From positions 62,001 through 126,000 of the forward strand of contig NW_026921433.1 of the NCBI RefSeq assembly GCF_032062105.1: DNA of 64,000 nucleotides. Reading direction: 5' to 3'. Numbering within the stretch: position 1 is the stretch's first letter; the number at the start of each line of letters is the position of its first letter. This DNA is from Saccostrea cucullata. Taxonomy: Eukaryota. The notes under the pieces were generated by a model that was not told the DNA's origin, ran no database searches, and worked only from the letters and a program-made list of their open reading frames with translations. Shown here piece after piece: positions 5,410 through 58,316 of this stretch. The translations under genes and the position numbers were made by a program.

Positions 5410-6067
5410 TATACAGTTATAGATACGCATTGCTTTCAGTAGTGTTATATAAAGGAAAACATTTGCAAATGTAAATATAATGAAATAACTAAAATTGTAC
5501 CATCAACTATATCCCGTGTATTAATTGAAATTATGAAGAATTTATGGCTAAACATCAAGCTCAAAATATTTAGACTCCTGAAGCATTATTTGATACAATT
5601 TAACTCATCGATCATCTTGAAACCTTTGATGAAAACTATATAAGATCTCTGTACGAGTCCATTCCCCGTCAAAGTTTAGTTGTAATCAAGTCAAAGGACA
5701 ACATCAATAGGTATTAATAAGGTTCTTTAATTTTTACACATTAAATATATATTGTTTATTTTTTGCAAAGAGCGCTGTGCTGAGCCTCTGGGTCCAATGT
5801 CTTTTTAATAAGGGCGTGTGATATTGATTATGAAACATATGGCGATAACAAACAAAAGTAGGATCAGGTGCAATGGAGGAGTGAGCATCCCCTGCCGACC
5901 GGTCATACCTGCCATTAGCTGCGTGTCATGGTCAGGAAATAACAGAAATGTCCGTCTTCAGGTTGAATCACTGCTGAAACTCCAAAATTTCCAAACTGAT
6001 AAGAAGTCACTTCAGTAAGTTGTGTGTCTGTGTTGTGTAAGTAGTAAGTGGTTTCAGTGTAAAATTT

Positions 6068-6550
6068 GTGTACTTACTTAAGCGCTATGATCTTACTGAG
6101 GATGGGTTTAAGCGAAAATTTAGATCTTCCAGGCCAGTAGAAGGTGAAACTTTCATTCAGTTTTCTGTGAGACTTAGTAGTTATATGCAAAGATGGTTGA
6201 GAATGGTAAACATTGCTGAAACTGAAGCTTTCTTTGATTTGGTTCTAAGAGATCAGTTTTTGCATGTTTATAATAGGGATTTAACTCTTTTCCTAAAAGA
6301 GCGAATACCAAAATCCATTCAAGACATGGCTAATTTAGCAGATCAATACCGTGAAGCAAGGTTGGCTAATGCTGTAACATTCACTGGCGACAAAAGCAAT
6401 GATTACCGCCCAAAAAAGAAGGATCGACACGATCATGATAGTCACAGAAATGGTAAAGGTGAGAGAAAATATCAAGCTAAGCCTTCGTTTATTCCAAAAT
6501 CAGAAAGACGATGCTATGTATGTCATAAGCAGAAACAAGCCAAAGGTTAG
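6068..6550 (+). pseudogene. Gag remnant of Gmr1-type element (SCAN-related capsid plus zinc knuckle)
   Basis: LLKRYDLTEDGFKRKFRSSRP...ETFIQFSVRLSSYMQRW...RDQFL; RRCYVCHK. Confidence 0.75.
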
Positions 6551-6763
6551 TTCAGTTACTCATAAGCAATCGGAGTATTCTGTAAATGAGGAAACTAAAA
6601 AAAGGTGAAACCGTCGCCAAGGTACGTTTCGGTACTTCTTTACCAACAGCCAAATTAATGTAACAAATTTTAACGCAGGTGACTTTTCAATTCAGATCTC
6701 TTCATCTTGCTATCAGAAGCAAAATAACTTGCCTATTTCAGCTGGATATGCCGAAGGTAACCT

Positions 6764-17559: not shown

Positions 17560-17709
17560 AATCATTCATTACATACTCGTGTGGGATAGTGAAATTCCAC
17601 CTCGGGGCCAAGAGTCATGGTCTAGGACTCGGCAAAGCCTCGTTCTAGACTGTGAATTTTGTCCCCGAGGTGTAATTTCACTATCCCACACTCGTAGTAA
17701 TGAATGATT
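17560..17709. mobile_element. 150-bp foldback (hairpin) element
   Basis: AATCATTCATTAC...GTGTGGGATAGTGAAATT...CTCGGGG mirrored by CCCCGAG...AATTTCACTATCCCACAC...GTAATGAATGATT around a GGCAAAGCC loop. Confidence 0.75.
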
Positions 17710-17715
17710 CTATTA

Positions 17716-17855
17716 ATCCCTTTAGGTGAACAGAGAATATCAGAAATGGATAACGACACGAATTATCAGGAGTTATTGCAACAAAGATATAACTATAGTT
17801 ATCTCCGCAGTTCAATTTACATTGTACTTTGTACATTAATTGGTATAACTGGGAA
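17716..17855 (+). pseudogene. Truncated duplicate of the 5' end of the GPCR exon
   Basis: MDNDTNYQELLQQRYNYSYLRSSIYIVLCTLIGITG (ATG 17746) matches MDNDTNYQMLLQQRYYYSYLSSSIFIVLCALIGITG at 19951, including the upstream AG; homology stops at ~17855. Confidence 0.85.
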
Positions 17856-18734
17856 ATTTGTTTTTCTATGTCATAAACCAAAACTAAAAGAAAATTTGAG
17901 TTACCCTGAAAAAGAAAAAAAAATTAGCAAAGTACGTGTAAGCAACAATTAAACAGCAAGTTTATTAATTTATCAGAAAATATTTTCTGTTCTTTATGGT
18001 TACCTACAACATGGCTTTATGATGAATGGTGACTGTTTCTATTCTAACGTCCACTTCACTTATTTGAGTAGCACATGATTGTGAGGTTTATTGTCTTTTA
18101 TTTATGACTTATACAAGAACTTGCTCTACTAATGAACGAAGAGCACACGGCAGGTATGACAGATCAAAAGGAGATGCTGGCTCCTCAATGACACCTAATC
18201 CCACCTCTAATGGCTTTAAAAGTTTGTGTTTGCTCTGCTACTGATCTGTCGTTGAAGTGGATTTTGAACATACCGATGGCTACTATTCCTTTTCTTGATA
18301 TATTCTAGTAAGTTTATGTAGCGTGATATTAAAGCTTAGGAATCGTGATCATGTACCTGAATTTTGCCTACTTTTCATGGTTCTTTTGAATACTTTTTGC
18401 AAAAATACTCACTATCTTTTCTTTTAATATTGTGTGAGGTATGTTTCGGAACGAGTTTTTTTTTCCTTTTGGGCTTGAGCTAAAAGATATTTTAAGTGAC
18501 ATTTTATTTCTTTGTGTAAGGACTATTTCCTTTGCATCGATATATTTATATAGGGAGCGGTAAATTTATGGTTATATTCTATACTTCCTCAATTTACTGT
18601 TCACGGTTCAGCAGACAATAATTAAAGCAGTCATACTACGAGGGCCTCTTACTTCCTGGACATGCATATAAGATAATTTTATCATTAAAAAATACTATGC
18701 AATGTAACCTACATGTTTGGCGAATATATATATG

Positions 18735-18935: not shown

Positions 18936-19950
18936 GTCGTCACAAAGGTTAGGTTTACTGTTGCAAAAAGATTATAGCATATGAGATCAACTAAAAGTAT
19001 TACGGATATTTGAAATAATCATTCCTAACATATTTTGATTTACTTTCATGAACCTTGGATCAAAAATGTTCCACCCATCATAATTTTTTTCTTATTGATG
19101 GGAATTGAAACAGCAACAATATTTTTTAATGAATATAAAGAAAATATTTATACTTTCACTTTGAATAAACTTCACTTTAAAGAAACAAACGCAATCATTC
19201 CCAATGTCTTCTTTAATTGAATTTTTTCAGGGAACCGCCTTCAAATCAAAATCCTACCTGACGATACATGTATACTTGACTAGCCAACACAATTGCACAT
19301 TTTCATTATTCAGTTATGGCTGAGTCAAAAACAAACACTTTTAAAACGTTTAATTGGTCGGATTTTAAAATAATCAATCCATTTCTTTCAACTTATGAAT
19401 AAATAGAATTTTATCTTTTGAAATCAGCTATATTTTATACAATGTTTAAAAAATAAAAACTTCTAAAAATAAATGCAACTTATTTTATAAAGTGTATCGC
19501 AATGTTCTTGATTCATTGTATATATAGAACTGTAGATATTACTTTTGACATAGAGTCCAATATTATAACACAAAATTACTATTGCAGGACTTTTACTACC
19601 TTATATCATTCTTCATTTTAAAACTTCATTTTAGATTCATTTCTAATCAAGCAAGGGTTACATCGCAAAAGTTGATAGGTGATATATTTGCATCATAAGT
19701 AAACAATACGTCATTTGTGTAATATATTGTTTGATTATTAAAACATTTATTTCGCTCGTGTTTTTCAAAATCAGAATTTCCTCGAATAAATTTTCAGTCC
19801 TAAGCTTGAATACAGACTACTTACACATTTGAATTACAAAAAATTAAAAGGTTTTCAATAATCGCATATATACGTATTTACAGTGTACCACAAGGAAGAA
19901 ATGATAGTTTTCTTACATCCCTTTACGTAGATGAATAGAGGATATCGGCA

Positions 19951-21165
19951 ATGGATAACGACACAAATTACCAGATGTTATTGCAACAAAGATATTACTA
20001 TAGTTATCTCAGCAGCTCAATTTTCATTGTACTTTGTGCATTAATTGGTATAACTGGGAACTTTGCAATTATATATTTCTACTTCTTCCGCATCAAAGAG
20101 AGAGGAGAGCGTTACTTTATCCCGTTATTGGCCATTGTTGACCTTGTGGCGTGTTTTACAAGTCCCCCTTTCTACATCTTGGACAACACCTTCTTTTTCA
20201 ATTATCCCAGTGATACAGCCTGTAAAATTCTTGCGTTTCTACAGACGTGTGTTCCCGGAGCATCAGCTCATATACTCCTTGTTATATCTATACAGAGATA
20301 TCTTCTTGTTTGTAAACCTTTCGGTCCAAAAATGACTCTTGTTTGGAAAAGAGCTTCTTTTGGAGTAGTTTGTGGAATTTCTGTGTCTTATTCTGCTCCT
20401 CTACTTTGGACCGCTGGTATTCTAGAGTCAACAGAAATATTCATGGACCACAATGTCACAATTACTATATGTAAATTTTCCGTTGACTCCTCACCAACAA
20501 TAACCGTGTATTTCGGATTTCTGACTCTCATTATGTTGGCAAACCTATTTATTACAGCAGGGTTGTATGTTCCCGTTTTGAAGCGAGTTAGGCGTTCCTT
20601 CCTTCAAAGATCCAAGACAAATAAAGCTTATAATAACGGAGAAGGAGTTGTGGAATCGTCATATGCAACGCAAACAACTGAAGCAGAGAATGGTTCCGTA
20701 GACAGCACGAACAATGCTAAAGGTCCGCAATTAAGTGAGACGACAATACACAATGCAACGAATGATTGCCAAGAAACTGTTCCTCAATCATCAAATAATA
20801 TCTCTGAAAATATTGTTGAAACAAATGTGGATGATTGTAAAAGCAGCACAGCAAAGAAAAAGGCAAGCACCAAAATGGCGTCCGTGCAGAGACGAGTGAC
20901 GTGGATGTTTTTTGTTATAATACTTGCTTATGTCTTTTCTTACATACCACCACTTATTATTTTAATTCTTGTGTATACAGTTGAAGATTTTAGTTTCATA
21001 AACCTTACCGAGGCTCAGACTAATGCATGGCTTTATTTTTCACGATTTGTGTTTTTGAATCAAATTATCAATCCTTTTATTTACGGTTATTTTGATACAA
21101 AATTCAGACATCAGCTTCGTATCTGTTGTAAAAGAAGAAGCTCGAAAAAGTTCAATTTAATTTAA
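19951..21165 (+). CDS. Rhodopsin-like (class A) GPCR, 404 aa, peptide-receptor-like orphan, single coding exon
   Basis: Seven hydrophobic segments; GN (TM1), LAIVD (TM2), conserved Cys before TM3, IQRY (DRY position), FSYIP (TM6), NPFIY (TM7), CC after helix 8; long polar third intracellular loop; possible acceptor AG at 19929-19930. Confidence 0.93.
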   Translation: MDNDTNYQMLLQQRYYYSYLSSSIFIVLCALIGITGNFAIIYFYFFRIKERGERYFIPLLAIVDLVACFTSPPFYILDNTFFFNYPSDTACKILAFLQTCVPGASAHILLVISIQRYLLVCKPFGPKMTLVWKRASFGVVCGISVSYSAPLLWTAGILESTEIFMDHNVTITICKFSVDSSPTITVYFGFLTLIMLANLFITAGLYVPVLKRVRRSFLQRSKTNKAYNNGEGVVESSYATQTTEAENGSVDSTNNAKGPQLSETTIHNATNDCQETVPQSSNNISENIVETNVDDCKSSTAKKKASTKMASVQRRVTWMFFVIILAYVFSYIPPLIILILVYTVEDFSFINLTEAQTNAWLYFSRFVFLNQIINPFIYGYFDTKFRHQLRICCKRRSSKKFNLI

Positions 21166-37975: not shown

Positions 37976-40450
37976 AATTGTTTGAATGAAATGATGTTTC
38001 GTTTATTACATGTATTTCTTATAGTTTTTTTTTCCTCACAAATGCACAGCTTCTCATTTTTATGACGAGGAAAAATATTACAAATTGATTTCGTTTTAAT
38101 TGGAATATTTCTAACCCCCCACCATCCCACGGCGCAGATAAGTACTTAATGGTTTCTAACATACAGTATTGAAAATACTTAACTGGTCATATTCTCGACC
38201 AGGGTCATTACTCTTATTCCTTGTTTTCTTTCCTTATTCGGTACATTATTGAGATCGGGGTTCATAGTGTTGATCAGTGAGTCACTCTGCTTCTTAGATA
38301 GGATTCCAGCTTGTACTGTCTCTTTCCATATTCAGCAGAAAGACTTCTCCGCCGCCTGGTCTATTTCTGTACTGCTATTCTTCTACAGGGCCCAGTCTAA
38401 TGAAGTAACATTACACCGAATGTTCAGGGAAGCCAACATTATCGGGAAAAAAAGATTTATTTGAAAATATTTATAAATAATTCTCTTTTAGATCTTTTAT
38501 GTTTGAACTCTTTTATAAATTAATGGCTGTATTTTACGTCACGATTTTATACATATGCCTAGATTATCATATTTTTTCATGGTTTATGAAAATCGTATAT
38601 AAATGTACTGACTTGATACATCATTCTATAAACAAACGTACATAGAAACAAAATTCAAACATATGATCAAAACAATCACAAACGATCAAGAATATTACAT
38701 TGTTTAATTGCTAGCACTAGCAACTAAGTTAGTCTATATTTCTAAAATGTTCGGCTTCACGGTCAGGCATTCTGGGAAAAACTCTGAAAACTACAATCAA
38801 TAGACTGTACGATAACAATTTCGTTGTGTCATTAAATAACATTGGTCTTTTCTTTTTGATTCTGAAGTTTGTTAATTTATTGTGTAACCATGGTAACTTA
38901 CACTTCAAAGTTATAACTACACAACAAAAACTTAGGTCATACACTGTATAATATCAATTCAAGATTCTAGACATCGATCTAGCTTGCGAGTTATAACACC
39001 TTCTTGGATAATACCGTCAACCTAAAAAAATTGGGGTTTTTTTTCTTTTCAAAGTTTATTGGCAAGACACGATAATCGACTTATGAAATGCAGCTCCACA
39101 CTTATATAATTTTAATTCTATAAAATACACTTAAAATTAATAAAAAGAATAGAAATCTAACTATCAGACTCCAGCCTCGTTAAACATTTAAAAAATCAGT
39201 TAATTAAAACAGTTGATAACGAACCTTCCTTTCTTTGTTTAAAAATTGCTACATGTATACTGCTCTAGCTTACCTATCTATTTTAAAAGATAAACTTGTG
39301 TATTGTTATATACCTTTCGGAGATACACATTTTCAGCCTCCATTGGAAGTGCAGATATTGTTACATGTACAGGACAGCTGTTATTGCTGTACACTCGAAC
39401 ACATTGTTACACCTTTAATATTAACATTAAGCGATTTTTTTAACGAAGAATTTTTTTTAACAATATACAGTCATGTATAACAATTTTACATTAAAAGTGT
39501 AGTTCTTCCTCGTAATGTTTATTTCATTGTCAAACCTGCAGCACTTCAGCATTCTCTGCTAGAGGGCGCTTCGTAATGTTCAGTCGTCTTTATTACAAGA
39601 ATCTTGTAAAAAGGATATGAATGGTAAAGGTTTACGTAAAATATTTTTACACCGAGATAAATAAAATCATTTAGATATTTTTCCATCCTCAGCTTTTTAC
39701 TTACCTTCAACTTAAATTGATACAATTTATTATTAATTGTCGGTATATTGAATGTCGAACTATTTTACTTGCTTAAATTTCTATGCCTACTGAAACTGAT
39801 ATTTTTAAATAAGAAAAGTGAAACTTTTGACATTCTTTATGTCATGACACAAAATCAGTCGCCTTGTTTTAGGAAATGGTGACTTTTCATTATAAATACT
39901 GTATTTTTCTATAAAAAAGAATTCAAGAAAAAAAAAATGAATTAAAAAAACCCGACACCTGACATGTTAGGTTGGCCTGCAGTTCATTTAAAAGTCCACC
40001 TAGTACCACTTAAACCTGTGTTTTAAATGTAACTGCATGTATCCAATCTAAATGGCCGCTCTTATCAAATTCTACAGGCACAGGGGACGATAAAATCAGA
40101 CATTTAAATACCTGTTTATCACAGCTAAAACTTAATCCGTCCAAACCTAAGAAACACTCTGTCATGTTCGGGGATATATGTTATCGAAATTTGTCAAGAA
40201 ATTTTTATTCTGGATGTTTTCTAGAGTGATTGTAATTATTTCTGGATTGTTTTCGAGACCAATTTCTGTCTCCATGTTTAGGAATCGTCTGCTATCGTGA
40301 TCGCGTGCGATATGACGTAAACGTTTCCGGGTGTCTCAATTGAAAAAGTGAGATGACGGCCAAGAAAAATCCAAGGAACTTAGGGCGAGGAAAACATAAT
40401 CAATATTGTAATTAGTTTATTTATACTCACCGCAACAAAAACCAGGGATA

Positions 40451-43400
40451 ATGGCGATGCTGAGAGGAAATCCGGACACCCTGGACGACGAAAGGGTAAG
40501 AGTTTGGAGAGACATAATGATATATTAACACTGAACAATTTCTTAATTTAATTTATAACCCTCAATATATTGTGTTTCATGAATGACTGTAGTTTGTCAA
40601 TGTGTGTTGTTATTGATTATTTTATAGTATAAAATTTATACCGTTTTGATGACCGCACGAGCTGTGTTGTAATAGAAATAAATTGAGATTCAACAGTAGA
40701 AATATAAAAGCCCCCCCCCCCTTCTCAAACGACCCACAAAAATCGTGAGTAACTAAACTAGAGGTAATGTGAGCGATGAGCTCACTAAACGATACCCCCC
40801 GCCTCCATATATAGTTATAATGACAAAGTCCATGTTTTGCTGTGGCCGGAAAACCAAAAATGTGTGTCGGATCAAAAAGTGAAATAGGAGGTGCACAATG
40901 GCAATATGTAATAAAGATTCTGTGAAAGTTTCATAAAATTTCATTCAGTGGTATGAGAGGAGTTGCGGATAATAGATGGGTACCCTAAAGCGTAACAGAC
41001 GGACGGACGGACAGACAGACAGCTAGACGGACGGACGGACAGACGTACAGACGGACGGAATTAACGATTACTATATACCCTCCCGCTTTTCAAGCGGGGG
41101 GTATAATAAGAAAAAAGTTTAAGACAGCATTTTAAAGTTTGGTATGCATGTCAGTTTTGAATATATTTTGTCTCTTCTAACGTAAAATGAATGTTAAATT
41201 TGATTTTGTTCAGGGTTTTGTTTACCTTTGATAAACACTGTAATTTTAAAATGACAGGTAGATTTATTTCTAGATCCTACTGTCAGAAATAAGCGCCTTA
41301 AAGATTACGTAATAAGCTTAATTATTCTCCCCCTAATTAAAAATTGTTAGTTTGTTATTTACTGAAAGAAGCGGAAGCGTTCTTTAATTTTAGGTTGTTT
41401 GGAATGATAGTTTTGTATACGAAATTCATGTCGCGCCGTATCCTGAATTAAAACACTGGCCTTAATATTTTAGATTAACCCTCTAAACTTTTGAATTGGC
41501 AGTAAACTTAACCGGCCTTGTTTCAACAAAGTTTTAACTTTAGACCTTTAAATTTTAGATCTTGAAGTGTGTGGAATACTTGCAAGTAGTTAAGAAAATC
41601 AGCAGGCCTATATGCGACTTAAAACCTGAACAAATATTTTCATGAGAATTTGAGAAAGACTTTTTCTTTGTTTCGCAATATCTGTAAATAATTCAGTCAG
41701 GGTACACGTGTATATTTAGTTTATTTTCTATTTCAAAGTCTTTCTTAATCTGCCGTGATTTTGTCCGTACTTTAGGTTTTCTTAGGATTTGATTATCTTC
41801 TAGTAAAAATCAAAGAAAGCGACAGAGATTTCAGATGCAATTATTTTGAAGGGAAAAAAGTTCGCTTCAAGGGTTAAGCACGCATGCTTTTCTTCGCCAT
41901 GAATAATTTAAATCGTCAATTAATTTGAAATCGACACTAGCAATAAAAAAATAGATCAAAAAGATCTAAACTACCCTATGTAATACATTGCCTCTTACGG
42001 GACTGCAATTTCTTCTTTAAAATCGATTTTCTTTATTTTCTTCTACTTTTTAGTTCTTTTCTATCTTTCCCCTTTAAGTTGTACATGTATATATATATTG
42101 TCATTATAACACGTAAATGAAGTGTACATATACTTTATATAGTATTTCAATGTATTTAAATCCCAACAAATGTGAAAAAAAACATACATGGATGTACACT
42201 GATACTCCTAACATGATAAAAATAATTCAGTGACCCCCCCCCCCCCGGGACAATTTTGCTTTATCTAGTTTAATATGATAATCAGGTAATGTGTAGGGGA
42301 AAACTTGGAACCTAACATCAACCCCTACCCTCATTCCTTCCTTACCAAATATGACTTTGGAGACATTGTTTTAAAAGAGATATCTATAGAACTTTTTTTA
42401 AATGTCTAAAACTGGTTTCTGAGGGAGATCTATAACTCTATATACAATATTTACAAAGCTTTACAATGTCTGAAACTGCTTTTTTTACTGAGAGTGATTT
42501 ATATGAAGAGCTTTACAATGTGTTATATTGCTTTCTTCTATAAATCAAATTGATACAGTTTACTTCTTGTACAGAGGGTTCTTTTAAGCTTTACAGTGTT
42601 ACATAGATTTGCAATGTATGATAGAGAGAGGGAGATTTATAGAGATTTACAATGTCTGATACTGTTTTATCTTACAGAGGGAGATCTATAGAGATTTACA
42701 ATGTCTGATTCTGTTTTATTTTACAGAGGGAGATCTATAGAGCTTTACAATGTCTGATACTGTTTTATTTTACAGAGGGAGATTTATAGAGCTTTACAAT
42801 GTCTGATATTTATTTTACATAGGGAGAACTATAGAGATTTACAATGTCTGATACTGTTTTATTTTACAGAGAGAAACTATAGAGATTTACAATGTCTGAT
42901 ACTGTTTTATTTTACAGAGGGAGATCTATAGAGCTTTACAATGTCTGATACTGTTTTATTTTTACAGAGGGAGATCTATAGAGCTTTACAATGTCTGATA
43001 CTGTTTTAATTTAGAGAGAGAAACTATAGAGATTTACAATGTCTGATACTGTTTTATTTTTACAGAGGGAGATCTATAGAGCTTTACAATGTCTGATACT
43101 GTTTTATTTTACAGAGAGAAACTATAGAGCTTTACAATGTCTGATACTGTTTTATTTTTACAGAGAGAGATCAATAGAGATTTACAATGTCTGATACTGT
43201 TTTATTTTACTTAGGGAGATCAATAGAGATTTACAATGTCTGATACTGTTTTGTTTTACATAGGGAGATCTATAGAGATTTACAATGTCTGATACTGTTT
43301 TATTTTACATAGGGAGATCTATAGAGATTTACAATGTCTGATACTGTTTTATCTTACAGAGGGAGATCTATAGAGATTTACAATGTCTGATACTGTTTTA

Positions 43401-46400
43401 TTTTACAGAGGGAGATCTATAGAGATTTACAATGTCTGATACTGTTTTATCTTACAGAGGGAGATCTATAGAGATTTACAATGTCTGATACTGTTTTATT
43501 TTACATAGGGAGATCTATAGAGCTTTACAATGTCTGATACTGTTTTATTTTACATAGGGAGATCTATAGAGATTTACAATGTCTGATACTGTTTTATTTT
43601 ACATAGGGAGAACTATAGAGATTTACAATGTCTGATACTGTTTTATTTTACATAGGGAGAACTATAGAGCTTTACAATGTCTGATACTGTTTTATTTTAC
43701 AGAGAGAAACTATAGAGATTTACAATGTCTGATACTGTTTTATTTTACAGAGGGAGATCTATAGAGATTTACAATGCCTGATACTGTTTTATTTTACAGA
43801 GAGAAAGTATAGAGATTTTCAATGTCTGATACTGTTTTATTTTTACAGAGAGAGATCTATAGAGCTTTACAATGTCTGATACTGTTTTATTTTACATAGG
43901 GAGATCTATAGAGATTTACAATGTCTGATACTGTTTTATTTTACAGAGAGAGATCTATAGAGATTTACAATGTCTGATACTGTTTTATTTTTACAGAGAG
44001 AGATCTATAGAGCTCTACAATGTCTGATACTGTTTTATTTTTACAGAGGGAGATCTATAGAGATTTACAATGTCTGATACTGTTTTATTTTACAGAGAGA
44101 GATCTATAGAGATTTACAATGTCTGATACTGTTTTATTTTACAGAGAGAGATTTATAGAGATTTACAATGTCTGATACTGTTTTATTTTACAGAGAGAGA
44201 TTTATAGAGCTCTACAATGTCTGATACTGTTTTATTTTACAGAGAGAGATCTATAGAGCTCTACAATGTCTGATACTGTTTTATTTTACAGAGAGAGATC
44301 TATAGAGCTCTACAATGTCTGATACTGTTTTATTTTACATAGGGAGATCTATAGAGCTTTACAATGTCTGATACTGTTTTATTTTATATAGGGAGATCTA
44401 TAGAGCTTTACAATGTCTGATACTGTTTTATTTTACATAGGGAGATCTATAGAGCTTTACAATGTCTGATACTGTTTTATCTTACAGAGGGAGATCTATA
44501 GAGATTTACAATGTCTGATACTGTTTTATCTTACAGAGGGAGATCTATAGAGCTTTACAATGTCTGATACTGTTTTATTTTACAGTGAGAGATCTATAGA
44601 GCTTTACAATGTCTGATACTGTTTTATCTTACAGAGGGAGATCTATAGAGATTTACAATGTCTGATACTGTTTTATTTTACAGAGGGAGATCTATAGAGC
44701 TTTACAATGTCTGATACTGTTTTATTTTACATAGGGAGATCTATAGAGATTTACAATGTCTGATACTGTTTTATTTTACAGAGGGAGATCTATAGAGCTT
44801 TACAATGTCTGATACTGTTTTATTTTACATAGGGAGATCTATAGAGCTTTACAATGTCTGATACTGTTTTATTTCATATAGGGAGATCTATAGAGATTTA
44901 CAATGTCTGATACTGTTTTATCTTACAGAGGGAGATCTATAGAGATTTACAATGTCTGATACTGTTTTATTTTACAGAGGGAGATCTATAGAGCTTTACA
45001 ATGTCTGATACTGTTTTATTTTACATAGGGAGATCTATAGAGCTTTACAATGTCTGATACTGTTTTATTTTACAGAGGGAGATCTATAGAGCTTTACAAT
45101 GTCTGATACTGTTTTATTTTACATAGGGAGATCTATAGAGCTTTACAATGTCTGATACTGTTTTATTTTATATAGGGAGATCTATAGAGCTTTACAATGT
45201 CTGATACTGTTTTATTTTACATAGGGAGATCTATAGAGATTTACAATGTCTGATACTGTTTTATTTTACATAGGGAGATCTACAGAGCTTTACAATGTCT
45301 GATACTGTTTTACTTTACATAGGGAGATCTATAGAGCTTTACAATGTCTGATACTCTTTTATTTTACATAGGGAGAACTATAGAGCTTTACAATGTCTGA
45401 TACTGTTTTATTTTTACAGAGAGAGATCTATAGAGATTTACAATGTCTGATACTGTTTTATTTTACATAGGGAGAACTATAGAGATTTACAATGTCTGAT
45501 ACTGTTTTATTTTACAGAGAGAAACTATAGAGATTTACAATGTCTGATACTGTTTTATTTTACAGAGGGAGATTTATAGAGCTTTACAATGTCTGATACT
45601 GTTTTATTTTTAAAGAGGGAGATTTATAGAGCTTTACAATGTCTGATACTGTTTTATTTTACATAGGGAGATCTATAGAGATTTACAATGTCTGATACTG
45701 TTTTATTTTTACAGAGAGAGATCTATAGAGCTTTACAATGTCTGATACTGTTTTATTTTACATAAGGAGATCTATAGAGATTTACAATGTCTGATACTGT
45801 TTTATTTTACAGAGAGAAACTATAGAGATTTACAATGTCTGATACTGTTTTATTTTTACAGAGAGAGATCTATAGAGCTTTACAATGTCTGATACTGTTT
45901 TATTTTACATAGGGAGATCTATAGAGCTTTACAATGTCTGATACTGTTTTATTTTACATAGGGAGATCTATAGTGATTTACAATGTCTGATACTCTTTTA
46001 TTTTACATAGGGAGATCTATAGAGCTTTACAATGTCTGATACTGTTTTATTTTACATAGGGAGATCTATATAGATTTACAATGTCTGATACTGTTTTATT
46101 TTACATAGGGAGATCTATAGAGCTTTACAATGTCTGATACTGTTTTATTTTACATAGGGAGATCTATAGAGATTTACAATGTCTGATACTGTTTTATTTT
46201 ACATAGGGAGATCTATAGAGATTTACAGTGTCTGATACTGTTTTATTTTTACAGAGAGAGATCAATAGAGATTTACAATGTCTGATACTGTTTTATTTTA
46301 CATAGGGAGATCTATAGAGATTTACAATGTCTGATACTGTTTTATTTTACAGTGAGAGATCTATAGAGATTTACAATGTCTGATACTGTTTCATCTTACA

Positions 46401-49400
46401 GAGGGAGATCTATAGAGCTTTACAATGTCTGATACTGTTTTATCTTACAGAGGGAGATCTATAGAGCTTTACAATGTCTGATACTGTTTTATCTTACAGA
46501 GGGAGATCTATAGAGCTTTACAATGTCTGATACTGTTTTATCTTACAGAGGGAGATCTATAGAGCTTGCAGAGAGGGCCAGGTGGAGGAGCTGATCAGAC
46601 TCGTGAGCGGGAACGCTAATATGGTGGTCAAGGTATGTAAGGGATACAGTATATAATTCTAGGGCTGTCACAGCATTTTTGGCACTTCTGAAAATTGTTT
46701 TGGATTGGGAGGAGAATTAAAAGTAAAATTTGTTGTAGCTGAGTTCTACATTATTACTAGTATTTATAACTTAATCAAATATAAGGAATTTCTTTCAAGT
46801 AAATTAAAAATGTAGTTTTAATTGGAAATGGATACCTTAATCAAAGCAGACATCACTCATTCACATTTATTAATGAACATGCTTTGGCTATAGTGACACT
46901 TTTTTAAGATAGCCAAAAACTCCATATTTTCAAAAAGGTTTACTTTAAGTATTGATCTTGTCTATTTATGACCTGCTAAAAGTATAAATTACAGAAATGT
47001 AACAGTATTGATTTCTACACAAACAGATTTCATCGTACAATTCATGGTAAAATTTTCTTTGTACATACCTTTCAATGCTCTATCACGTCTGCAATTTTAT
47101 TGCATCGTTTGATCTTTGGTGTTCTTCTTGCATCTTAATCATGTAAGAATCATGTAAGAACAAAGAACATCATGCTTTTCAGGCCTTTTTCTTCTGTCGC
47201 CCTGTAAATATTGTAATGTATTTATATACACAGGATGGTCAGAAACCTTTACATATCGTCGCACTAAGCGGAAGAGAAGACATGGAATCCATAATCAGTG
47301 CGCTGCTTAAAATCGGAAGTGACGTTAACGCCACGACAACTACAGATGAAGACACGGTCCTACATTTAGTCATTAAACACGCTGTTCTTCGGTTGGCCTT
47401 TCAGACTTGCCTGATGATTCTAGAGCATAATCCAGATCTTGATATACGAAACAAGGTTAAAAAACATATCAATTAAAACTAGTAAAGATTAAAAATTGAA
47501 AATTAAAAAAAAAAATGTACAGAGAAAATTCGAAAGGGTTATGAACTCACAGTAATTAATTAATACTTTCTTTACATGAAAAAATATAACCGTCAAATAT
47601 TCTTCCTCTATCTGAAACAGAACTTACGAACACCATATGATATAGCTATGGCACAGGAATACTTTGAATTGGCTAATGTATTAGATGGTTCGATGACTGC
47701 CGAGGAGGCCCGAGACTACTACACAAAGTCCCTCGGAGAATTATACGGGGTGAATGAAGTATTATTCCTGCAATCGACGTGTTTTTTAAATTGTTGAATC
47801 AAATTTTTAAAATATTGAAATAATGAATTATTTCGACTAGTATTGATATGGAAGATTTTTTCCCAATCATATAGGGACGGCTTATAGACGCTGTAATGAA
47901 CAATAATGAAAAAGAGGCTTACGATTGTGTTAATCAGGGAGCAGATTGTAACTGCCTAAATAAAGTAAGATCACAATGAAAATGCAAACAAAAACTGAAT
48001 TTCAACATTTTTTCTTTTCTTTATAAGTACAACGATTCTGAAATGACAATGCGTTAGCATTTACCATTATTGTTTTGTTTGCTGTAGCATGGCGCTGGCG
48101 CTATACACTACATGTTTACCAATCTTTACCAACATCCCCCGTTAAACCTGCTCGGTCGAATGGTGGATGCCAAGGCAGATGTCAATCTCAGGGATTACGT
48201 AAGATGACATTTTTTTCCCAAAACTATTTTGTTAAAATGAAAGTTAGTTTTACTAGTATTGTGTATGTTATTTCTTTTGACACATATAGATGTTTTTCTT
48301 TTTATCCAATTTTTTACGTATGAAAAATATTCTAGTAGAAATCTCACCGGATTTTTAATGTAAATTTAAGAATAAATTTATCATGCATATTTCTCTAGAG
48401 GATAAAGGATATAAGCTACAAAATATTTTGATTTCTTCCTCTTCTGTATGACACAAGAAATATTTATTCAATTTTGCATTTTCTGTAATGTTTATTAATA
48501 AGATTCTATTAAGATATCATTTCATACACCTTTTCAAGGAAGGGGATACGGCCCTAAATCTGGCAATAAAGAAACCTAGTCTACGACAAGATAATCAAAT
48601 GTACAACGTAGTGGATCAATTACTAAAATGGGGAGCGGATCCAACTCACAGAGATCTGGTTTGAAATTATATATTTAAAATACATGTAACCTTTTCATCA
48701 TTATATCTGGAAAATATGCAAAATAAATAGAAAAGAAATCAATGCCCATAAAATTTTTGTCTCTAAAATTAACGCCATGATTGAATTTAAAAAAGTCTGA
48801 GAATATTTTTTGGTCCATAAACATTTAATATATTACATGTAATTGTTTGCATTGTCAGAGACAGGATTTACTTCATGGCAGTTAACAATTAATTAACAGT
48901 TAATCCTCTTCTTACAGGATGGTAACGATGCTCTAGCACTAGCAGAGAGTAGAAACTATCTGGATGTGGTAAAGTTACTGAAAAGACAGAAAACAGCCAG
49001 GATGACGGTAAGTATCTAGATATTATAGAATCAATGCTAGATAAGTTGAAGGATATATGTAGAACAATGTTTGTTGATTTGACTTTTATTAGTCTTGGAG
49101 CAGTGATTACCTGTTTGCTCTTGAGTGTTGAATAGATTTTAAATAGTGATTATAATAAAAATGTGTGAAAAAAAAGTAGAAAGAAAGAAAGGGAGAGAAG
49201 AAAAAAATACATAAGTATTACATTTAAGATTAACATACCTAAGTCATTTGATAAGAAAGGGATTTTTTGCTGAAATATATGTATTGACAAAGTAAAGTTT
49301 TTTTTCTTTTGTTGTGCAAAGATCGAACGCTGAAATTTTGAGCAGTGTTAAAGTGTAACATTTTTAAACTCCTTTACTTCATATACTTGTTATTTTGTTT

Positions 49401-52400
49401 GTCTATAGTTATTGCTAGTTTATGTCATGTGAATGATGCTGTGTGTTTGTGGTTTGTAGCCTCCCCCTCCAATCACTGCCATACCCACTCGACAGGTACG
49501 GTATTACAAAACTTTTCACATCTTCCATAATGAGCATAAAATCATAAGATCATTATTATTCTTTTCACATTTCTCTATCAAACTACTCTTACAATAGAAC
49601 TGATATCCAACTTCAATTTAGTAAAAAAGGAACAGGCGTAATTTAATGAATGGACTCCATCAATAAAATAAAAATCTTTAAATCTTGAGTAATATCTTCA
49701 AAATGTGCTTGTTTTTAAAGTGGTCTGCTTGAATTGTTTGTCATGACGTCAGTAGGCGTGGTAAATATTTTAGAAAATTGATCAAATAGGTAAAGAGATG
49801 CTGTAAGGTCGACTTTTAGAAAGAAAAACATTTTATTTGAAGTAATTGTGAAAACAGAAATATGCATACTTGTAATCAAACCTAAAGATTAGTTGGTCAC
49901 GAGATGGAAATCTACATTGGAGAATGTCGATTTAATTTACATCTAAACTCCTCTCCTTATACAAAACCATCATGTTATTCCAAATTGGGAATATACACAT
50001 TAACCCCAAAAATGAGACACATTCGAAAAAGGAAGTAATGTGTTCATCTATCCCCATATAAGCCTTCACCAATCGCTGTACCTTGGGAATCGATGACGTC
50101 ATCCCAATTAAAGCCCATGTCTCCGGCATCCCAAACTGGTCGAATATCAAAGGTACAAAATTTGAATCACCTGTTATATATTAACTGCCCAGAATTATTA
50201 ATGAAATACATTTCCCTTCCCTGCATGCATACATATTGAGAAATGTAAGATTAACCTTTTTTTATTGGAAAAACCATTTATCAGATGAATATCTTCTCCT
50301 CATTTCATTTTCGTAAAGCTCGATTTTTTTTTTGTTTTCAATTTTTATAATGAAGGATATGAAGATAACGAACAGTAATCAATGTCAAAGTCCATAAAAC
50401 AGTACAAAACAAGTAAGAGCAAACACGGACCACCAAAACCTCAGAGGTGGGATCAGGTGCCATGGAGGAGTAAACATCCTATACATTGTATTTTTAATTA
50501 ACATTCCTAATAATATTACTTATGCATTTATTCTTATTCTTATGCATTGACAAAAATACACTCGAAAAATGAATATTTGTAAATATAAATATCAATTTAG
50601 AATTAAATTTATTTAAAGGAATCACGTTCTGAATGAAAATGGAATGTTTTGGCATATCTTGATTCTCAGAGAATTTCCTTTCATATCTGAAATCCTATCT
50701 CAGTAGCAATACTATAAATAAAAGTTGATTGTATATCTTTTTCATATACATGTACATGTACGAAAAACACTCATATAAAATAGACCTTTAAAAGAACTCC
50801 GTCTCGTACTCACAGTCTTATTTCCTGTATATATAGTCTCCTACTCCTTCCGAATCCTCCACGCTGCCGCCTCTATCTCCAACTAGAGCTCTCCGACCAT
50901 CGCCAACACCCAGGAGAAACCGGGGCCCCGAACGAAATCACCAGGTTTGTTGCATGCAAATTCCTAACACTGGATACTCTTAATGCTTGCATGCAAAAAC
51001 TAATTTGTGAAAAATCACATGTTTGAATAAACCCATTATAATTATTAATATTGCTTCTCTGGTACATTCTGAATGATTTCACAAAGAGATCACGTTCCTT
51101 TCTGATGGTTTTATTACAATCCGTGTAGTCTCCGGTATCGTCTGACTCCTCCACACTGCCACGAGTTTCCCCTAATAGACCTCTGCGACCAACTCCATCT
51201 CCATCACCAGAACAAAATCAGAATCTCCAGCCCGAACTTCCACGAGTTGCCCCTAATAGAGTTCTGCGACCAACTCCATCTCCATCACCAGAACAAAATC
51301 GGAATCTCGAGCCCGAACATCTACGAGTTTCCCCTAATAGACCTCTGCGACCAACTCCAATTCCATTGCCAGATCAAAATCGGAATCTTGAACCCGAACA
51401 TGAGGTTTGTTGCATGCCCGTCCAAAACCTTTCGATTATTGTTTTGCATGCAACTTCTAATTTTAAGCTTTGTCTGGACTTTTCTGTTTGGAAAAGGTGT
51501 AAAATTGAAATTGACCTAATAATGTTTTTTTTGTTACTAACAATGGGTTGTGGTATTTTTTTTTTTGTACCCAAATCATATGTCTTTCCTGTTGTGTTTT
51601 TATCTGTACATTGATATCATTAATGGACTCTGAACGTTAAATCAATTACATGCATTTTCTAAATAGAAAGACATTTTATTGAACAAAAATTATTAGCAGA
51701 AATCAGTATTTCACTTTCTTCTCTTTAAGCCTATTTATATATAAAATTCAATCTACATTTGTTACTTCTAAATTATTAAGTATACTTACTAGTATTTGAC
51801 AAATCAGGAAGAAAAAAAGAGGAAATAAATTAAATTATTGTTTAACTTTTCTTTCAGCATACTTTCTCAGTGAAGGAATTAGAATTTTTAAACAATGCCT
51901 TAAATGTAACAATTTTCGTCAGTCTATTTTCAAATGATCATATAGAATTCACCCCTGTTGAAAGCCAGGAATAATCATACAATTAAAAAAAAATAAAACC
52001 TTGTATATTTCTAGGAAACACTGGCTATTGAAGAAGATACAGTAAGCTTATTATTGCCCTGACCTTGTACTTTCCTGTTTCTGAAATTTCAATTCACATC
52101 TCAGAACTTTATAAATAATCAGTACATGTATTCGGTTATCACTTCATATATTTTCTTCCTAAGACACACTTCTTCGCAATATTTTCTTTAAATCATTTTG
52201 TGATTACCACATTTTTACTCAAAGAAATGTTCAATTTTATCAAGCACTCCGTCCTTTCACTTAATAATTCTTTTTTTTTTAAGGCATTATTGTAGAAAAT
52301 AAACAACGCAGATGTATTACAATTGATGCACTTCTGTATTAATATACCTTTAAGCATATTCAGTGTCTAATAACAAAATGTCCGTTTGACACATTTTGTT

Positions 52401-55400
52401 ATATTTTTTGTTGTTCTTATGCATGTTTACTTACAAATCTGTATCAGAAACAATCCTTTGTTGATCAATGCAATATTTAGCCGTGTAAAATTCATAACAA
52501 TATACTAGCTGTCTATATATGTTCATGATTTGCTTTCACAAAATCATTTTTTCTGAGACAATATCACAGAGTTCCTATTAGTGTTTGGGAAAAGTTACAA
52601 TTTTGCTTTCACTGGGCGCAAAATGACAACAAAAATATGCCACAAGTTACATTTAATTCATGAATGAATAAATATTGTTTTTACAATAATATTTATAAAG
52701 ATAAAAAAAATTGAAAAAAAAATATACAAAGCTTGATACAAATTACTCATCTAAGGAAAAATGCAGAAACCATATGTTGCATATTGTTCACTATTGAATT
52801 AAATAATTAAGTAATAAATCAGTAGATGAAAATATCTGGATATCTTTTTAAACAAATTTTCCTTAATTTCCATTCAATTCATTGTTTGAATTTCCCTCCC
52901 TCAATCATACACCAAAAATGTGTAAAGACACTTAACTTTAATTATGAAGAATGAACTCTATTAGTAAGTCCATGAAGTGCCATTTGATAGCGGAATGCAC
53001 GGTATTTCATGAGAAAAAATTAAAAGAAAAAGTAAATGAAGCTATTTTAAATGATTTATTACTGTTTTAAAAAAATACACTAACACGGACATAAGGTTAC
53101 CTTTAGATATCAGGATTTTAAAGCTTTTTCAAAGACAAATAAAAAATAATTATCATTGTAGAAAATCAAGTACATGTACTTTAGCGATTTATAAAATGAG
53201 ATTTTATATTTTCTATAACTGTGCATTCTAGTTCATAAATGCAATAGATAATTTATATATGAAGTCATTATTTTAACGTAAACATCCTAAATTTGGAATG
53301 TGACACAAACCTAGCTATTTAAATATTTCAAATGTCAAAACAAGTTAGTTTTCAAGTAAATACATCGATACAACATATATTCACCGTTGCTTTAGCCGAT
53401 ATATTCATGTTTCTTTAAATTAATATGATGTTAATTAAAGTTTTCTAGTGAATAAAACATGCATTTCTTCACCATAGGATTAAGACCATATCATGTTTCT
53501 ATTCATATGTTATGCCAGAGTAAACAAGTGGTCATGAGATATAACAATTATTCACCATTGTTTCAGTTGATGCCTTCATTCATCTTTACATTTATATAAT
53601 ATTACATGTAGTTAATTCAAAAGCCTTTGTAAAAAAAAAAGTGAGATATAACATTTATTTCCTATTGTTTTTAGCAGAAACCTTCATTTTCCTTTACATT
53701 CATACGATATTAGTTAATTTAAAAGTTGTATCGCCTGAGTAAACATGTGAGATATAACATTTATTTACTGCACGAATTGTTTTTTTCTAAGTCGATGCCT
53801 TCATTTTTTTTTTCCGTTACATTCATACTATATCAGTTAATTCAAAAGTTGTATCATCTGAGTAAACAAGTGAGATATAACATTTATTGACCGTTGTTTT
53901 AGCCTATCCCCCCTCCAAGTCATCCAAGACCCCAGAGTCCAGCGGTGAGAAGCGACAACTAATTCTAGATTTTCTTATTAATCATTTTATTACAGAAGCA
54001 TTTTTGTAATCATGCACCGTTTTATTTTTCTTAAACATGTAAATAAATGTCTCCGTCCTTTTTGTTAACCAGATTTTTGAAAATATTTTTATACTTACAT
54101 TTAGTTTTGTATTCACACTGCTAGTAATCTAAATGTTTTGTTGATAGTTGCATATTATAATCATACCTGCTTTACGTTGGTCGCAGATGTAACTTCCCAG
54201 GAATATTACTATATAAAGCCATTACAAGTTTCCTCTTATTTTATGGTGATCTTATAATCGTAGTTAATTTTTAGTTTTCTAATCAAAATACTATGTAATC
54301 AGTAATTATCTTGGAAGCTTATTAAATAATTTTCTTTGCTCTTACTGAAAAAGAACGACACATCTTCGCTAGCCAAGGCTCTCTGATCTGAAATCTGCTC
54401 CATAATGCTGTAGAGTAGATTTCAGATCGGAGGCCCTTGGTTAGCGAACATGTCTTAAGCGAAAAGTTAAAATCTGTATTTATAACAACGTCATATTTTT
54501 TCATTAACAGAATAAAATTCTAACGATTCTTTTCGATAAACCCTTAAAAATTGTCTTCAAGAAAGTATTTGATTTAACAGTAATGATATGTAATGATAGT
54601 TAACATATTTGCTTTTAGTAATTTTTTAACTGTCTGATACTAATCCATTTACACATTAAAATATTTTTATTGTCAAAATGAGAATATAAGTAATATGTAA
54701 AAATTATCTTAACCTAGTCACAATTTATTTCTTAAATTATGTATAAAGTTTAAATAAAACAAAATTTTAAAGTAAGTTTGATTTGCTGATGGTAAAAGAA
54801 TAATGGCCTTATCAAACAGTTGAGGTTTTGAGGATTCTTTTTGACAGGAATCCATCACTTCCGCTATAGAGGAGGACAATCCAGATGACCTGGATGAACT
54901 GTTGGCGGATCCAGACGCCAACCTTAACATTCCTAACTCGGTAATGTATCTGGCGGATCCAGACGCCAACCTAAACATTTCTAACTCGGTAGTGTATCGG
55001 TTCAAGTCATCTATACCATTAAAAATTTTAAATACAATATCTAAATATATGCCCATGAATTATATCAAATTTGAGTTATAATATAGGGAAAGTACCCAAG
55101 ATATTATTATTGCACTGTCACAATATTTAAAAACAATTAATTGTTCTGGAATGATTTTTTATCCTCGCAGATGGGGTTATTTCCATTACATGTTGCAATA
55201 TTGAGAAATAACCCCGCCAGTAGGAACAATATGGTACAACGAATACTAAACAAAGGCGCCGACATAAACGTTAAAGCTATGCCTGTAAGTCTGCCTCTGA
55301 CGTTTATAATGTTTGATATATATGCCTCTAAGTATAATTGAGGATTGTTGCCATGTGAAATATATTTGTTTTAAGCTATAAAGAATATGTAGCACTGGAT

Positions 55401-57177
55401 ATAATTAAAACATGTTTGATCATTAAATGATCTCATTGAATTTGTTTTTCTTAAAATTAAGAAGGTACACAATTTAGCTATGTACTTAATTAAATACGAA
55501 AACATAAAGAAAAAAAAAACTTTTATGCTTCATGAAAAAGATTCATTTTTTGTTACTTAGAATGAAGATCATAATGAGGTATAAAGCTGAGTTTAAAATC
55601 GTCTTCTTTGCTTCAATTCCTTTATAGTTTATATAATTTATACCGCTGTCTGTCAGTAGGAAACTAACGACATGTAACACTGCATGAAATCAAAAGTTGT
55701 TTCTCGTAGTATGATTGTTTTAACTTGATGAAATTTCTGTAATGTGTATTGATGTTTCAAAAATTAGCGGGCGCAGGGCAAATCTCTGTTAAAGGTAATG
55801 TGATTGTCGTAAAAAACATATAAACCATGCACATTGTTTAACCCACAGATGATATATATTCGCCTGGGATTATAATTCACGATTTGATATGATAAACTTA
55901 ACTTTGTGGGTATGTCCTTGAAAAACAGTGCACAAACTTTACAAAATAAATCTTCATCCAATCATATGACACGAATATTTTATTGTTTCATGACATTCTG
56001 AGTACCAATGAATTAGTCACTTTTCTTTTCTTTAACTCCTCTTAACAAACTAGAAAGCGTTCGTATAATTTCATTTGTATGCAAAGTCCTTTTCTCTCTT
56101 AAAAGCTGTATCAAAATAGTTGACAAAATGCGATATAGCCTCGAAATCTTCCAAATATTCCTTACGATATACTAGCTTTTTTATTGCAATTTTTTAAATA
56201 TTTTCTTATCATTCCATTTGGAAAGAAGGAAATATTAAGATTTATCAATTAAGTAAGTACAAATCAATAAATAAATTTTGTATAATTTATCTAATTTTCA
56301 TTAAGTGATGTTTTTGGGGTGTTGTGTACTAATATGAGAACGTCCTTGCAATTAATATTCAGATGTTTTTTTCTTATATATCTATATAGAAGCTTTACAT
56401 AATATGCATGTATTTAACAATTACATCATGCACATTTAATTGTGAGTCTTTAAATGAAGATAAATATCATTTCTGGACGTTTATGATTTCCTCTACATTT
56501 TCGATTTGAATCTGTGTACATTTTAATTTTGAGTTTTATTGTACTCACGCTGTTTACAGGCTGGAAACACTCCTCTCCATATGTCAGTAGCCAGGGATCA
56601 ACTAGACACAGTCCGAATCTTATTGTCGTATAATCCAGCGATATCCCCAACTAATGATGTATGTACTGAATTTAGAAGTAAATATATAAGATGGACAATC
56701 CTGCAAATCAACCTTTATATGCAACTTCTTTTATTCGCAATTGTTGTTTTGAATTTCTCGACGACTATTAATTTTTACGTCGTAGGCAAGAATCTACAAA
56801 TAAAATACGAATTAAAGTCGCTTTACAAAAGTCTGTTATTGATACCTTTAATTTAACTGATGACCCCAAGAAATCATTTTTTTTTTAGCCTTTGAGAAAG
56901 TTGAGCAGGTTTGAAATTTAGAGTTAAAGGAGGAAAATAAACTAAAGAGTTAAAGGAGAAAAATGAACTAAACAAAGGTTTCATAACACTTCTTGAAAAA
57001 AAACTTTGAGGAAGATTAGTATTTTTTCTATCTGTTGTTTTTGTTATTAAGGAGGGTCAGACACCTTACAATTTCGCTGAAGAGAATGGTAACGCTGAAA
57101 TGATGAGGCTTCTGAAGGACCAGGAACAACGTGTACAGCGGAGTAAGGACAAATCCTCCACGTGTGTCATCTTATAA
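40451..57177 (+). CDS. Ankyrin-repeat protein with Pro-rich linker and C-terminal CaaX (CVIL), 633 aa, 18 exons
   Basis: Exons 40451-40495, 46549-46632, 47234-47455, 47621-47749, 47875-47964, 48088-48198, 48539-48658, 48918-49007, 49460-49495, 50063-50152, 50837-50944, 51129-51404, 52015-52041, 53903-53944, 54848-54940, 55171-55284, 56560-56658, 57052-57177; all GT-AG, all multiples of 3; ankyrin motifs GQKPLHIVA, DTVLHLVI, GDTALNLA, GLFPLHVA, GNTPLHMS. Exon 1 and the small linker exons are less certain. Confidence 0.82.
40755..41108 (-). mobile_element. DINE-1/HINE-like (Helentron-associated) short element in intron 1
   Basis: AAACTAGAG end, (GACG/GACA)n microsatellite, terminal hairpin TATACCCTCCCGCTTTTCAAGCGGGGGTATA. 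Confidence 0.7.
42380..46567 (+). repeat. 49-bp tandem array (about 80 copies) derived from the exon 2 splice acceptor
   Basis: Unit TACAATGTCTGATACTGTTTTATTTTACAG|AGGGAGATCTATAGAGCTT; the last unit continues into exon 2 (REIYRACREG...); degenerate at the 5' edge. Copy number estimated from length. Confidence 0.95.
51157..51401 (+). repeat. Coding 81-bp repeat x3 (27-aa Pro-rich unit)
   Basis: PRVSPNRPLRPTPSPSPEQNQNLQPEL-like units within exon 12. Confidence 0.85.
53350..53902 (+). repeat. Degenerate ~110-120-bp tandem repeat x5, each unit containing the exon 14 acceptor
   Basis: GAGATATAACATTTATT...TTGTTTTAG-like units with AG ending at 53395, 53566, 53674, 53791 and 53902. Confidence 0.75.
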
Positions 57178-58180
57178 CAGAGACAGTCTGCACCTGCGTG
57201 ACCTTCTCTGTGAGGTCACAATCGATTTCCATTAACAAATCCTTTAAGTGTAACATCTTATGACAGAGGCAATCTACACATGTGTGACCTTCTTTGTGAC
57301 GTCACAATCAATTCTTACCTCTTCGTTATTTCCACATGTGTTCTTTTAAAAACTCTTCCTATTGTGATGTACTCTTTAAGATACATGTTTCTTAAATATT
57401 TTCCTTTTTAACAGAATGAGATCTTTGGTTAGCACACCATATATGTGTTTGTATTTTACGTCTTGTTTAATATCTAAAAATCTAAATGTGTTGTTTTACA
57501 CTTATTGTTTATGGCTTTTGGCACCACCATTGTCTTGTCTAACGGTTGTACAAGTCCTGTAGAAAGGTTATTTTGTCTTTCAATTCTTCTAGTATATAAT
57601 TGAATGTATTCTTGTTAAACTATTGAAATGTCTGTGATATATTGCAATAAATTATTTTCATATTCTACATTTGGTTTTTCATCAGGAGATGACCCCTACC
57701 AGGTATATATATTTTGTGTGGTGTTGTATCTAATCACACTTTTTTACATTCTTAAGTACACTTTTTAAAATGAAAAAAAAAAAAAAACGAGACAGCAAAG
57801 TGAGCGATTTTCTTTGAGAAACATGTGCACTACCTAATATCAGGAAAGGAAAGGAAATAAATAAGGAAATAAATATCTTTTTTGTTTTCAACTTCTCTAA
57901 AGATTATTGAGGTAAGATTGTGCTTGGATTGTTTTATTTAATATCCATAAAACTGTAAATGAGTACCTATCTTTCCCTAAGTACTCTTCCTTGCTCTTAC
58001 AAGAATTGATTAAATACTCTACTGCATCGCTAATCTATATCGGAGGTTCAAATAAGCCTTTCTGATTAAATTCCATCCTACCTGTGTGCATATGTATGTT
58101 TTATCATATTTCCCAAAACTGGTTTATTTTCCAAACCTCCTGATCCATTTTAACCTTCTTTGTGTGAGCTCAAGGTATCA

Positions 58181-58316
58181 NNNNNNNNNNNNNNNNNNNN
58201 NNNNNNNNNNNNNNNNNNNNNNNNNNNNNNNNNNNNNNNNNNNNNNNNNNNNNNNNNNNNNNNNNNNNNNNNNNNNNNNNNNNNNNNNNNNNNNNNNNNN
58301 NNNNNNNNNNNNNNNN
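58181..58316. other. Assembly gap (136 N)
   Basis: Run of N. Confidence 1.

Follow-up and report, generated by a model that had tools for sequence, protein, structure and literature searches.

A minisatellite of about 80 copies of its own splice junction in intron 1 of an ankyrin gene of the oyster Saccostrea cucullata, probably a tolerated repeat of the 'mirage' type

Introduction

When the acceptor of an intron has been copied some 80 times within that same intron, are the copies a device that controls splicing of the gene or the debris of a mutational process that the gene tolerates? The question is raised by a 64,000-nucleotide stretch of the genome of the oyster Saccostrea cucullata (contig NW_026921433.1, positions 62,001 to 126,000 of the forward strand; hereafter the window, whose numbering is used throughout), in which intron 1 of an ankyrin gene contains a 49-bp minisatellite immediately ahead of exon 2. 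A first-pass annotation, made from the sequence alone, had offered two answers: either the upstream acceptors are strongly silenced by exon definition, or they divert transcripts to nonsense-mediated decay (NMD) in a manner dependent on copy number, perhaps titrating the splicing factors U2AF and SF1. The analysis reported here favours, with a probability of roughly 80%, a 'mirage'-type minisatellite, of the kind known from amphioxus, that derives from the gene's own junction and is tolerated mutational debris rather than a control device.

Anatomy of the array

Tandem Repeats Finder (TRF) reports a single array at 42627-46564, with a period of 49, 80.4 copies, 94% matches and a score of 6622. 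A parse anchored on the conserved core yields 80 well-formed units, 60 of them of 49 bp, 11 of 50 bp and seven of 48 bp; degenerate, strongly diverged copies precede these from about 42380 to 42646. The 49-bp unit comprises the terminal 30 nt of intron 1, with a CTGAT branch-point-like motif, a T-rich tract and YAG, followed by 19 nt that are the same or almost the same as the start of exon 2. The array fills the 3′ part of intron 1 and the copies lie entirely inside that intron. The last unit is continuous with the exon body, repeat and real exon 2 diverging at 46568. While the 5′ edge is decayed, the 3′ edge is homogeneous and identical to the working junction, a pattern that would fit growth or homogenisation near the 3′ end. 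The first-pass description of some 80 acceptor-like copies, of the composition of the unit and of the decayed 5′ edge is thus confirmed by TRF, the parse and a reading of the sequence. It was wrong to limit the TCTTACAG variant to the last four units, as around ten units across the array carry it.

Each YAG with preceding pyrimidines was taken as an acceptor and translated in the phase that the exon 1 donor imposes. Decoy sites of this kind, with an upstream tract rich in pyrimidines, number 78 (45 CAG and 33 TAG). All 78 frames are closed by a stop within 0-51 codons, and exon 2 is reached by none of them; the sole AG with an open frame is that at 46547-46548. The routes to the stop are those originally described: units with CAG are stopped by the TAG in the unit that follows, units with CAT-AG encode GDL and stop after three codons, and 48-bp units reach TGA. 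Three decoys, with their first exon base at 44537, 46451 and 46500, match the real site at all 49 positions (-30 to +19), and another 11 match it but for one base. The nearest decoys, which are identical to the real site, lie just 133-231 nt from the donor of exon 2. The units were also considered as recursive splice sites, in which an acceptor is followed at once by a regenerated donor (AG/GT), but they read CAG/AGG or TAG/GGA; a good donor is absent from the units, and CAGTGAG is found in two of them only. RNA folding of the last four units together with exon 2 revealed nothing unusual (z = -0.82).

Could the array be in part a product of assembly? The genome is broken up into 23869 contigs, tandem arrays are easily mis-assembled, and a globin mirage in the draft amphioxus genome was reported to be mis-assembled (PMC3087553). 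A shorter repeat, mis-assembled, would give an array that is real but whose length or internal order is not. Against this, the units hold many distinct variants in non-periodic order between a decayed 5′ edge and a homogeneous 3′ edge, a pattern that fits an array both real and evolving, and the assembly contains the locus once. We consider such an artefact very unlikely.

Origin from the intron 1-exon 2 junction

The unit is confined to this locus. A 31-nt unit core, with up to two mismatches allowed, has 78 matches in the 1.17-Gb genome, all 78 inside the array, and a BLAST search with 491 bp of the array retrieved only the array locus. An origin from a transposon or from a dispersed satellite was rejected, the unit being found at no other locus in the genome.

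The orthologous intron, which the first-pass annotation had proposed to inspect in related species, was compared in two outgroups. In Saccostrea echinata (locus L020) the junction occurs once (...TCTGATACTGTTTTCTTTTTACAG/AGGGAGATCTACAAAGCTTGCAGG) with no 49-bp array, and intron 1 measures 1916 nt against 6053 nt in S. cucullata, in which the extra length is due to the array. Flanking sequence is shared, window 41180-42116 aligning to L020:3461-4401 and window 46526-46717 to L020:4938-5130. The authentic 3′ splice region has a homologous, single-copy counterpart 5′ of S. echinata exon 2 (L020:4932-4961). An Ostrea-like genomic contig (L019) likewise contains one junction, and the 258 nt upstream of it hold no repeat-like sequence. 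IY[RK][AS]C, the residues that exon 2 encodes in its first 19 nt, are conserved in oysters lacking the array, and the exon part of the unit is therefore ancestral coding sequence. Given that, and outgroups lacking the array, it follows that growth of the array from the junction came later than the separation of the two Saccostrea species. The earlier proposal that it arose from an intron-exon junction is thus borne out by the uniqueness of the unit, the conserved exon residues and the single junctions in the outgroups.

The shared 19 nt could in principle be read the other way round, with a unit of an older intronic minisatellite having been exonised to give a new acceptor together with the opening 19 nt of exon 2. 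Oysters lacking the array, however, conserve the residues that those 19 nt specify; in S. echinata and Ostrea the exon starts in the same way, its start and the homologous end of the intron each being single-copy; and exon 2 is 28 codons long in all the oysters compared. The outgroups already contradict this reverse origin, and we find it scarcely credible.

The start of the expansion is less accessible than its end: the upstream flank at 42100-42660 has no significant similarity to L020:4380-4965, so that the 5′ limit of the expansion is not mappable. A CTATAG microhomology (at -34 in the S. echinata intron and at +9 in the S. cucullata exon) was considered as the seed of the duplication and discarded, since the joint between units falls after exon position +19 and not at CTATAG.

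Use of the acceptors

The RNA comparison covered positions 46350-47850. Contigs from RNA run X9 show the joints 46632>47234 and 47455>47621, both GT..AG. One of them covers exon 2 at 46567-46630 and joins it to exon 3, and a loose end past 47750 matches 47876-47905, in the exon beginning at 47875. Depth is 0 across the four nearest decoy units (46350-46553) and 5-8 on exon 2, the contig beginning at 46567, short of the acceptor. Of three raw RNA runs (X21-X23), the first gave six reads and the other two none, with no junction information. No decoy-using transcript was seen in this RNA, the sensitivity of which is very low.

The six X21 reads cover exon 3 only (47268-47424), at 95-99% identity, with common T>C differences and a shared loose end after 47424; they suggest a divergent allele or a close lineage carrying the same species label.

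Other lines of evidence bear on the acceptor itself. The exon 1 translation equals residues 1-15, and that of exon 2 residues 16-43, of the NCBI S. cucullata proteins P0180, P0181 and P0184, the models of which join the two exons as 40495/46549. A transcript contig of Magallana gigas (L018, with open frame P0005) is colinear: its first 15 codons align to exon 1 and the next 28 to exon 2, without gaps, and its 5′ untranslated region (UTR) aligns to window 40219-40422. In a search of protein representatives with exon 3, full-length relatives match from residue 44, that is 15 + 28 + 1. When transcript-derived protein fragments of S. cucullata were sought with the first 117 residues, the search yielded nothing but exon-3 fragments from the genomes of other oysters. 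The choice of 46549 as productive acceptor in the first-pass annotation is thus supported indirectly, by the NCBI proteins and the colinear M. gigas transcript, and this site is probably the productive acceptor, well supported by annotation and homology.

Comparison with known junction-spanning repeats

The 'mirage' minisatellites of amphioxus were first seen at Adh3, later at troponin C and PGBD5, and also in the globins BflGb6 and BflGb9; the mRNA is reported to be normally spliced (PMC3087553, PMC3902484). Like the oyster array, they consist of a tandem unit lying over an exon-intron border so that a splice signal is copied again and again, the authentic copy runs into the exon, and copies at one edge escape homogenisation (PMC3087553, PMC3902484). 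The closest parallel is BflGb6, in which the acceptor side is affected and the unit takes in the intron's 3′ end plus the 5′ portion of exon 2 (PMC3087553, PMC3902484). The oyster array has the structural features of this class, being a short head-to-tail unit that spans the border, ends in the authentic copy and was derived in place. It differs in its mollusc host, in its 49-bp unit and in having about 80 copies, where BflGb6 has 3-6 units of 150-160 bp, and it is much longer than the amphioxus globin mirages. Another difference is that normal splicing has been reported in amphioxus and is presumed in the oyster.

A second comparison is with the 37-bp variable number tandem repeat in intron 7 of human F7, where pseudo-sites identical to the authentic donor are functional in principle yet silent (Borensztajn et al. 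2006, PMC1557585). As a natural model, that repeat has been used to study how splice sites are chosen, and a 5′-to-3′ scanning model of donor choice was derived from it (PMC1557585). There too the terminal element lies over the exon-intron border and the pseudo-sites are identical in sequence. In F7, however, it is the donor side that is repeated and the authentic site comes first, while in the oyster acceptors are repeated and the authentic site closes a series of about 80. The scanning model therefore does not transfer directly, and to our knowledge no comparable model for the acceptor side is in use.

Tolerated debris or splicing control

The observations can be assembled into a simple scheme. 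A 49-bp piece over the intron 1-exon 2 border would have been duplicated in tandem in the S. cucullata lineage and then expanded, through slippage or unequal exchange, to about 80 copies. Since the extra copies are all upstream of an intact junction, they lie within intron 1 and the gene stays whole. The spliceosome would use only the last copy, presumably because it alone leads into the purine-rich exon 2 body and has, 84 nt downstream, a strong donor, a combination that would permit exon definition. Silencing of the decoys by exon definition is plausible on these grounds. Any rare use of a decoy would yield a premature stop and the product would probably be cleared by decay; some low-level use of this kind is possible.

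Several points weigh against this interpretation. No S. cucullata read or contig crosses the junction of exons 1 and 2, the X9 contig starting at 46567 and the three raw runs being nearly empty. Low-level decoy use is still compatible with the contig-level RNA, given its very low sensitivity, and transcripts removed by NMD would be under-represented in RNA. The nearest identical decoys are close enough to the exon 2 donor that they are not obviously shut out by exon definition alone. The length of the array is that of one assembly, and the enrichment of such arrays described below is a post hoc statistic.

Elements that do act on splicing in this way exist. Decoy 3′ acceptors such as In100 of caspase-2, and poison exons linked to NMD, comprise an intronic branch point, pyrimidine tract and AG, and either bind factors without productive use or give rise to stopped transcripts. 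Such elements are single, conserved and experimentally shown to act, while the oyster array is lineage-specific and 80-fold repeated. The second option of the first-pass annotation would make the array an attenuator of this sort, dependent on copy number: upstream acceptors would be used at an appreciable rate and the stopped transcripts degraded, or 80 copies would soak up SF1 and U2AF and so slow the removal of intron 1, array length in either case tuning the output of the gene. All 78 decoys do possess branch-point-like motif, pyrimidine tract and YAG, and all lead to premature stops; three of them equal the real site throughout the unit, decoys are transcribed earlier than the real site, and steady-state RNA would miss their products through NMD. 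Yet neither S. echinata nor the Ostrea-like contig has the array, so that any role would be new and non-conserved, and conservation across relatives, by which regulated unproductive splicing is recognised, is contradicted by its absence from both outgroups. RNA depth falls to zero over the nearest decoys in contrast to exon 2, several other such arrays are tolerated in the same gene (see below), and both amphioxus mirages and F7 pseudo-sites are reported without disturbance of splicing (PMC3087553, PMC3902484, PMC1557585). The idea of an attenuator or a U2AF/SF1 sink finds no support in our results and, with its two variants taken jointly, we judge it improbable. The array is better seen as a very large example of a known, apparently harmless type of repeat, and is itself probably harmless, than as a demonstrated splicing regulator.

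The host gene

Exon translations, matched one exon at a time, are exact consecutive substrings of P0180, P0181 and P0184, starting at residues 1, 16, 44, 118, 161, 191, 228, 268 and 298 (coordinates of exons 1-8 in Table 1), and Pfam finds ankyrin repeats in the exons 3′ of exon 2. The first-pass assignment to an ankyrin gene therefore holds, although the gene is much larger than had been supposed and takes in what appeared to be separate ankyrin genes downstream. It extends from about 40219 to beyond the end of the window, and three apparent tandem ankyrin genes (window 40219-64000 and the adjoining locus L021, C3570:124001-134000) are one multi-module gene, with an N-terminal ankyrin domain, proline-rich alternative exons (49460-49495, 50837-50944, 51129-51404 and 53903-53944) and repeated small ankyrin modules. 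After the proline-rich linker a second ankyrin module, at 54848-57174, terminates in a CaaX box (CVIL). Some NCBI isoforms end with this CVIL, after 57174, and longer ones add further modules beyond the window; a longer isoform in S. echinata splices on just ahead of the equivalent VIL codons. The family is mostly bivalve, with a few, more distant gastropod matches. Searches of the S. cucullata genome with exon 3 (as protein) and with exon 2 plus intron 2 (as DNA) found the locus itself only and no paralogue.

Two further repeats were seen in the gene. An in-frame repeat of 81 bp x 3 (SPNRPLRPTPSPSPEQNRNLEPEH-like units) occupies 51159-51401 of a proline-rich alternative exon and is present in NCBI isoform P0181. 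Similar GACG/GACA-based microsatellites are found in two introns, at window 40995-41059 and L021:8767-8832.

Other arrays over splice junctions

The acceptor array has company in the same gene, in both Saccostrea species (Table 1). The second copy of the 48-bp duplication at 54903-54998 brings an in-frame decoy donor (CTCG/GTAGTG), splicing at which would add 16 residues; in the NCBI proteins it is the first donor that is used, and the S. echinata counterpart (L020:15138-15240) is single-copy. The duplication at the end of the CaaX exon extends from the last codons through the stop into the beginning of the 3′ UTR, its second copy reading KSFKCNIL against KSSTCVIL. In the 68-bp array of S. cucullata the unit consists of the last 45 nt of an ankyrin exon and the AAC/GTAAGT donor, and GTAAGT is perfectly kept in five downstream copies. 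The orthologous junction is also repeated in S. echinata, with a unit of 28 bp instead of 68 bp. A composite array of S. echinata begins with three 77-bp copies of the exon-5 end and donor, followed by 30 copies of a 32-bp unit of exon-5 coding sequence.

The two loci hold nine sizeable arrays, of which six lie over a constitutive junction (P ~6e-5 under random placement of unit-sized seeds), or four of seven (P ~0.004) when the acceptor array is left out and the orthologous pair is counted once; the statistic is post hoc, from one gene picked for having such an array. To that extent, junction-spanning arrays exceed the expectation from random seeding. In oysters, as in amphioxus, duplication might be targeted to exon-intron borders; the acceptor array would be one of its products and would reflect a mutational bias tied to transcription, splicing or exon chromatin rather than random seeding. 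We put this forward tentatively, as a possibility that we hold to be rather unlikely.

Table 1. Features of the ankyrin gene locus in S. cucullata and of junction-spanning arrays in S. cucullata and S. echinata. Positions above 64000 continue the window numbering into locus L021 (L021 position + 62000).
Feature	Position	Strand	Description	Basis
Exon 1	40219-40495	+	5′ UTR and 15 codons; coding sequence 40451-40495 (MAMLRGNPDTLDDER); donor AGG/gtaaga, phase 0	NCBI proteins, M. gigas transcript
Intron 1	40496-46548	+	6053 nt	Comparison with S. echinata
Decayed array edge	42380-42626	+	Old, diverged copies	Sequence, unit parse
Minisatellite, 49 bp x 80.4	42627-46564	+	78 decoy YAG acceptors	TRF, unit parse, decoy frames, genome-wide pattern matches
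Authentic 3′ splice region	46519-46548	+	CTGAT branch-point-like motif, T-rich tract, CAG	Sequence; S. echinata homologue
Exon 2	46549-46632	+	28 codons (REIYRAC...MVVK), phase 0; donor AAG/gtatgt	NCBI proteins, RNA run X9
Exon 3	47234-47455	+	Ankyrin repeat	Pfam Ank and Ank_3, RNA joints, NCBI residues 44-117
Exons 4-8	47621-49007 (47621-47749, 47875-47964, 48088-48198, 48539-48658, 48918-49007)	+	N-terminal ankyrin module, phase 0	NCBI proteins
S. cucullata, 48 bp x 2	54903-54998	+	Spans donor at 54940	TRF, sequence
S. cucullata, 86 bp x 1.9	57149-57313	+	Spans end of CaaX exon (coding sequence end 57174, ...STCVIL)	TRF, sequence
S. cucullata, 68 bp x 6.8	69976-70437 (L021:7976-8437)		Spans AAC/GTAAGT donor; five perfect decoy donors	
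S. echinata, 77 bp x 3 + 32 bp x 30	L020:6969-8190		From exon-5 end and donor	
S. echinata, 71 bp x 2	L020:17094-17240		Spans donor	
S. echinata, 28 bp x about 45	L020:29564-30853		CAAACAAC/GTAAGT; donor orthologous to that of the S. cucullata 68-bp array	

Elsewhere in the window, a run of long, retrotransposon-like open frames at 6041-11205 (+) has protease, reverse transcriptase and integrase-like motifs recognisable by eye. A single open frame of 408 amino acids with hydrophobic segments lies at 19939-21162 (+), with a shorter look-alike of its N-terminus at 17704-17949. A run of N occupies 58181-58316.

Implications

The presence of junction-spanning arrays in one gene of two Saccostrea species extends the amphioxus 'mirage' phenomenon to molluscs. 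The origin of such repeats, and why exon edges should be favoured, was left as an open question in amphioxus (PMC3087553), and the oyster arrays sharpen it. It has further been suggested that mirage repeats supply raw material from which introns are gained (PMC3087553). With one acceptor among 78 decoys, three of them identical to it over 49 nt, the S. cucullata array offers an unusually clean natural test of acceptor choice. Were duplication indeed aimed at exon-intron borders, acceptor arrays of this kind would be natural, 80-fold competition tests, in which the choice of a 3′ splice site would come from the exon context and not from the site itself.

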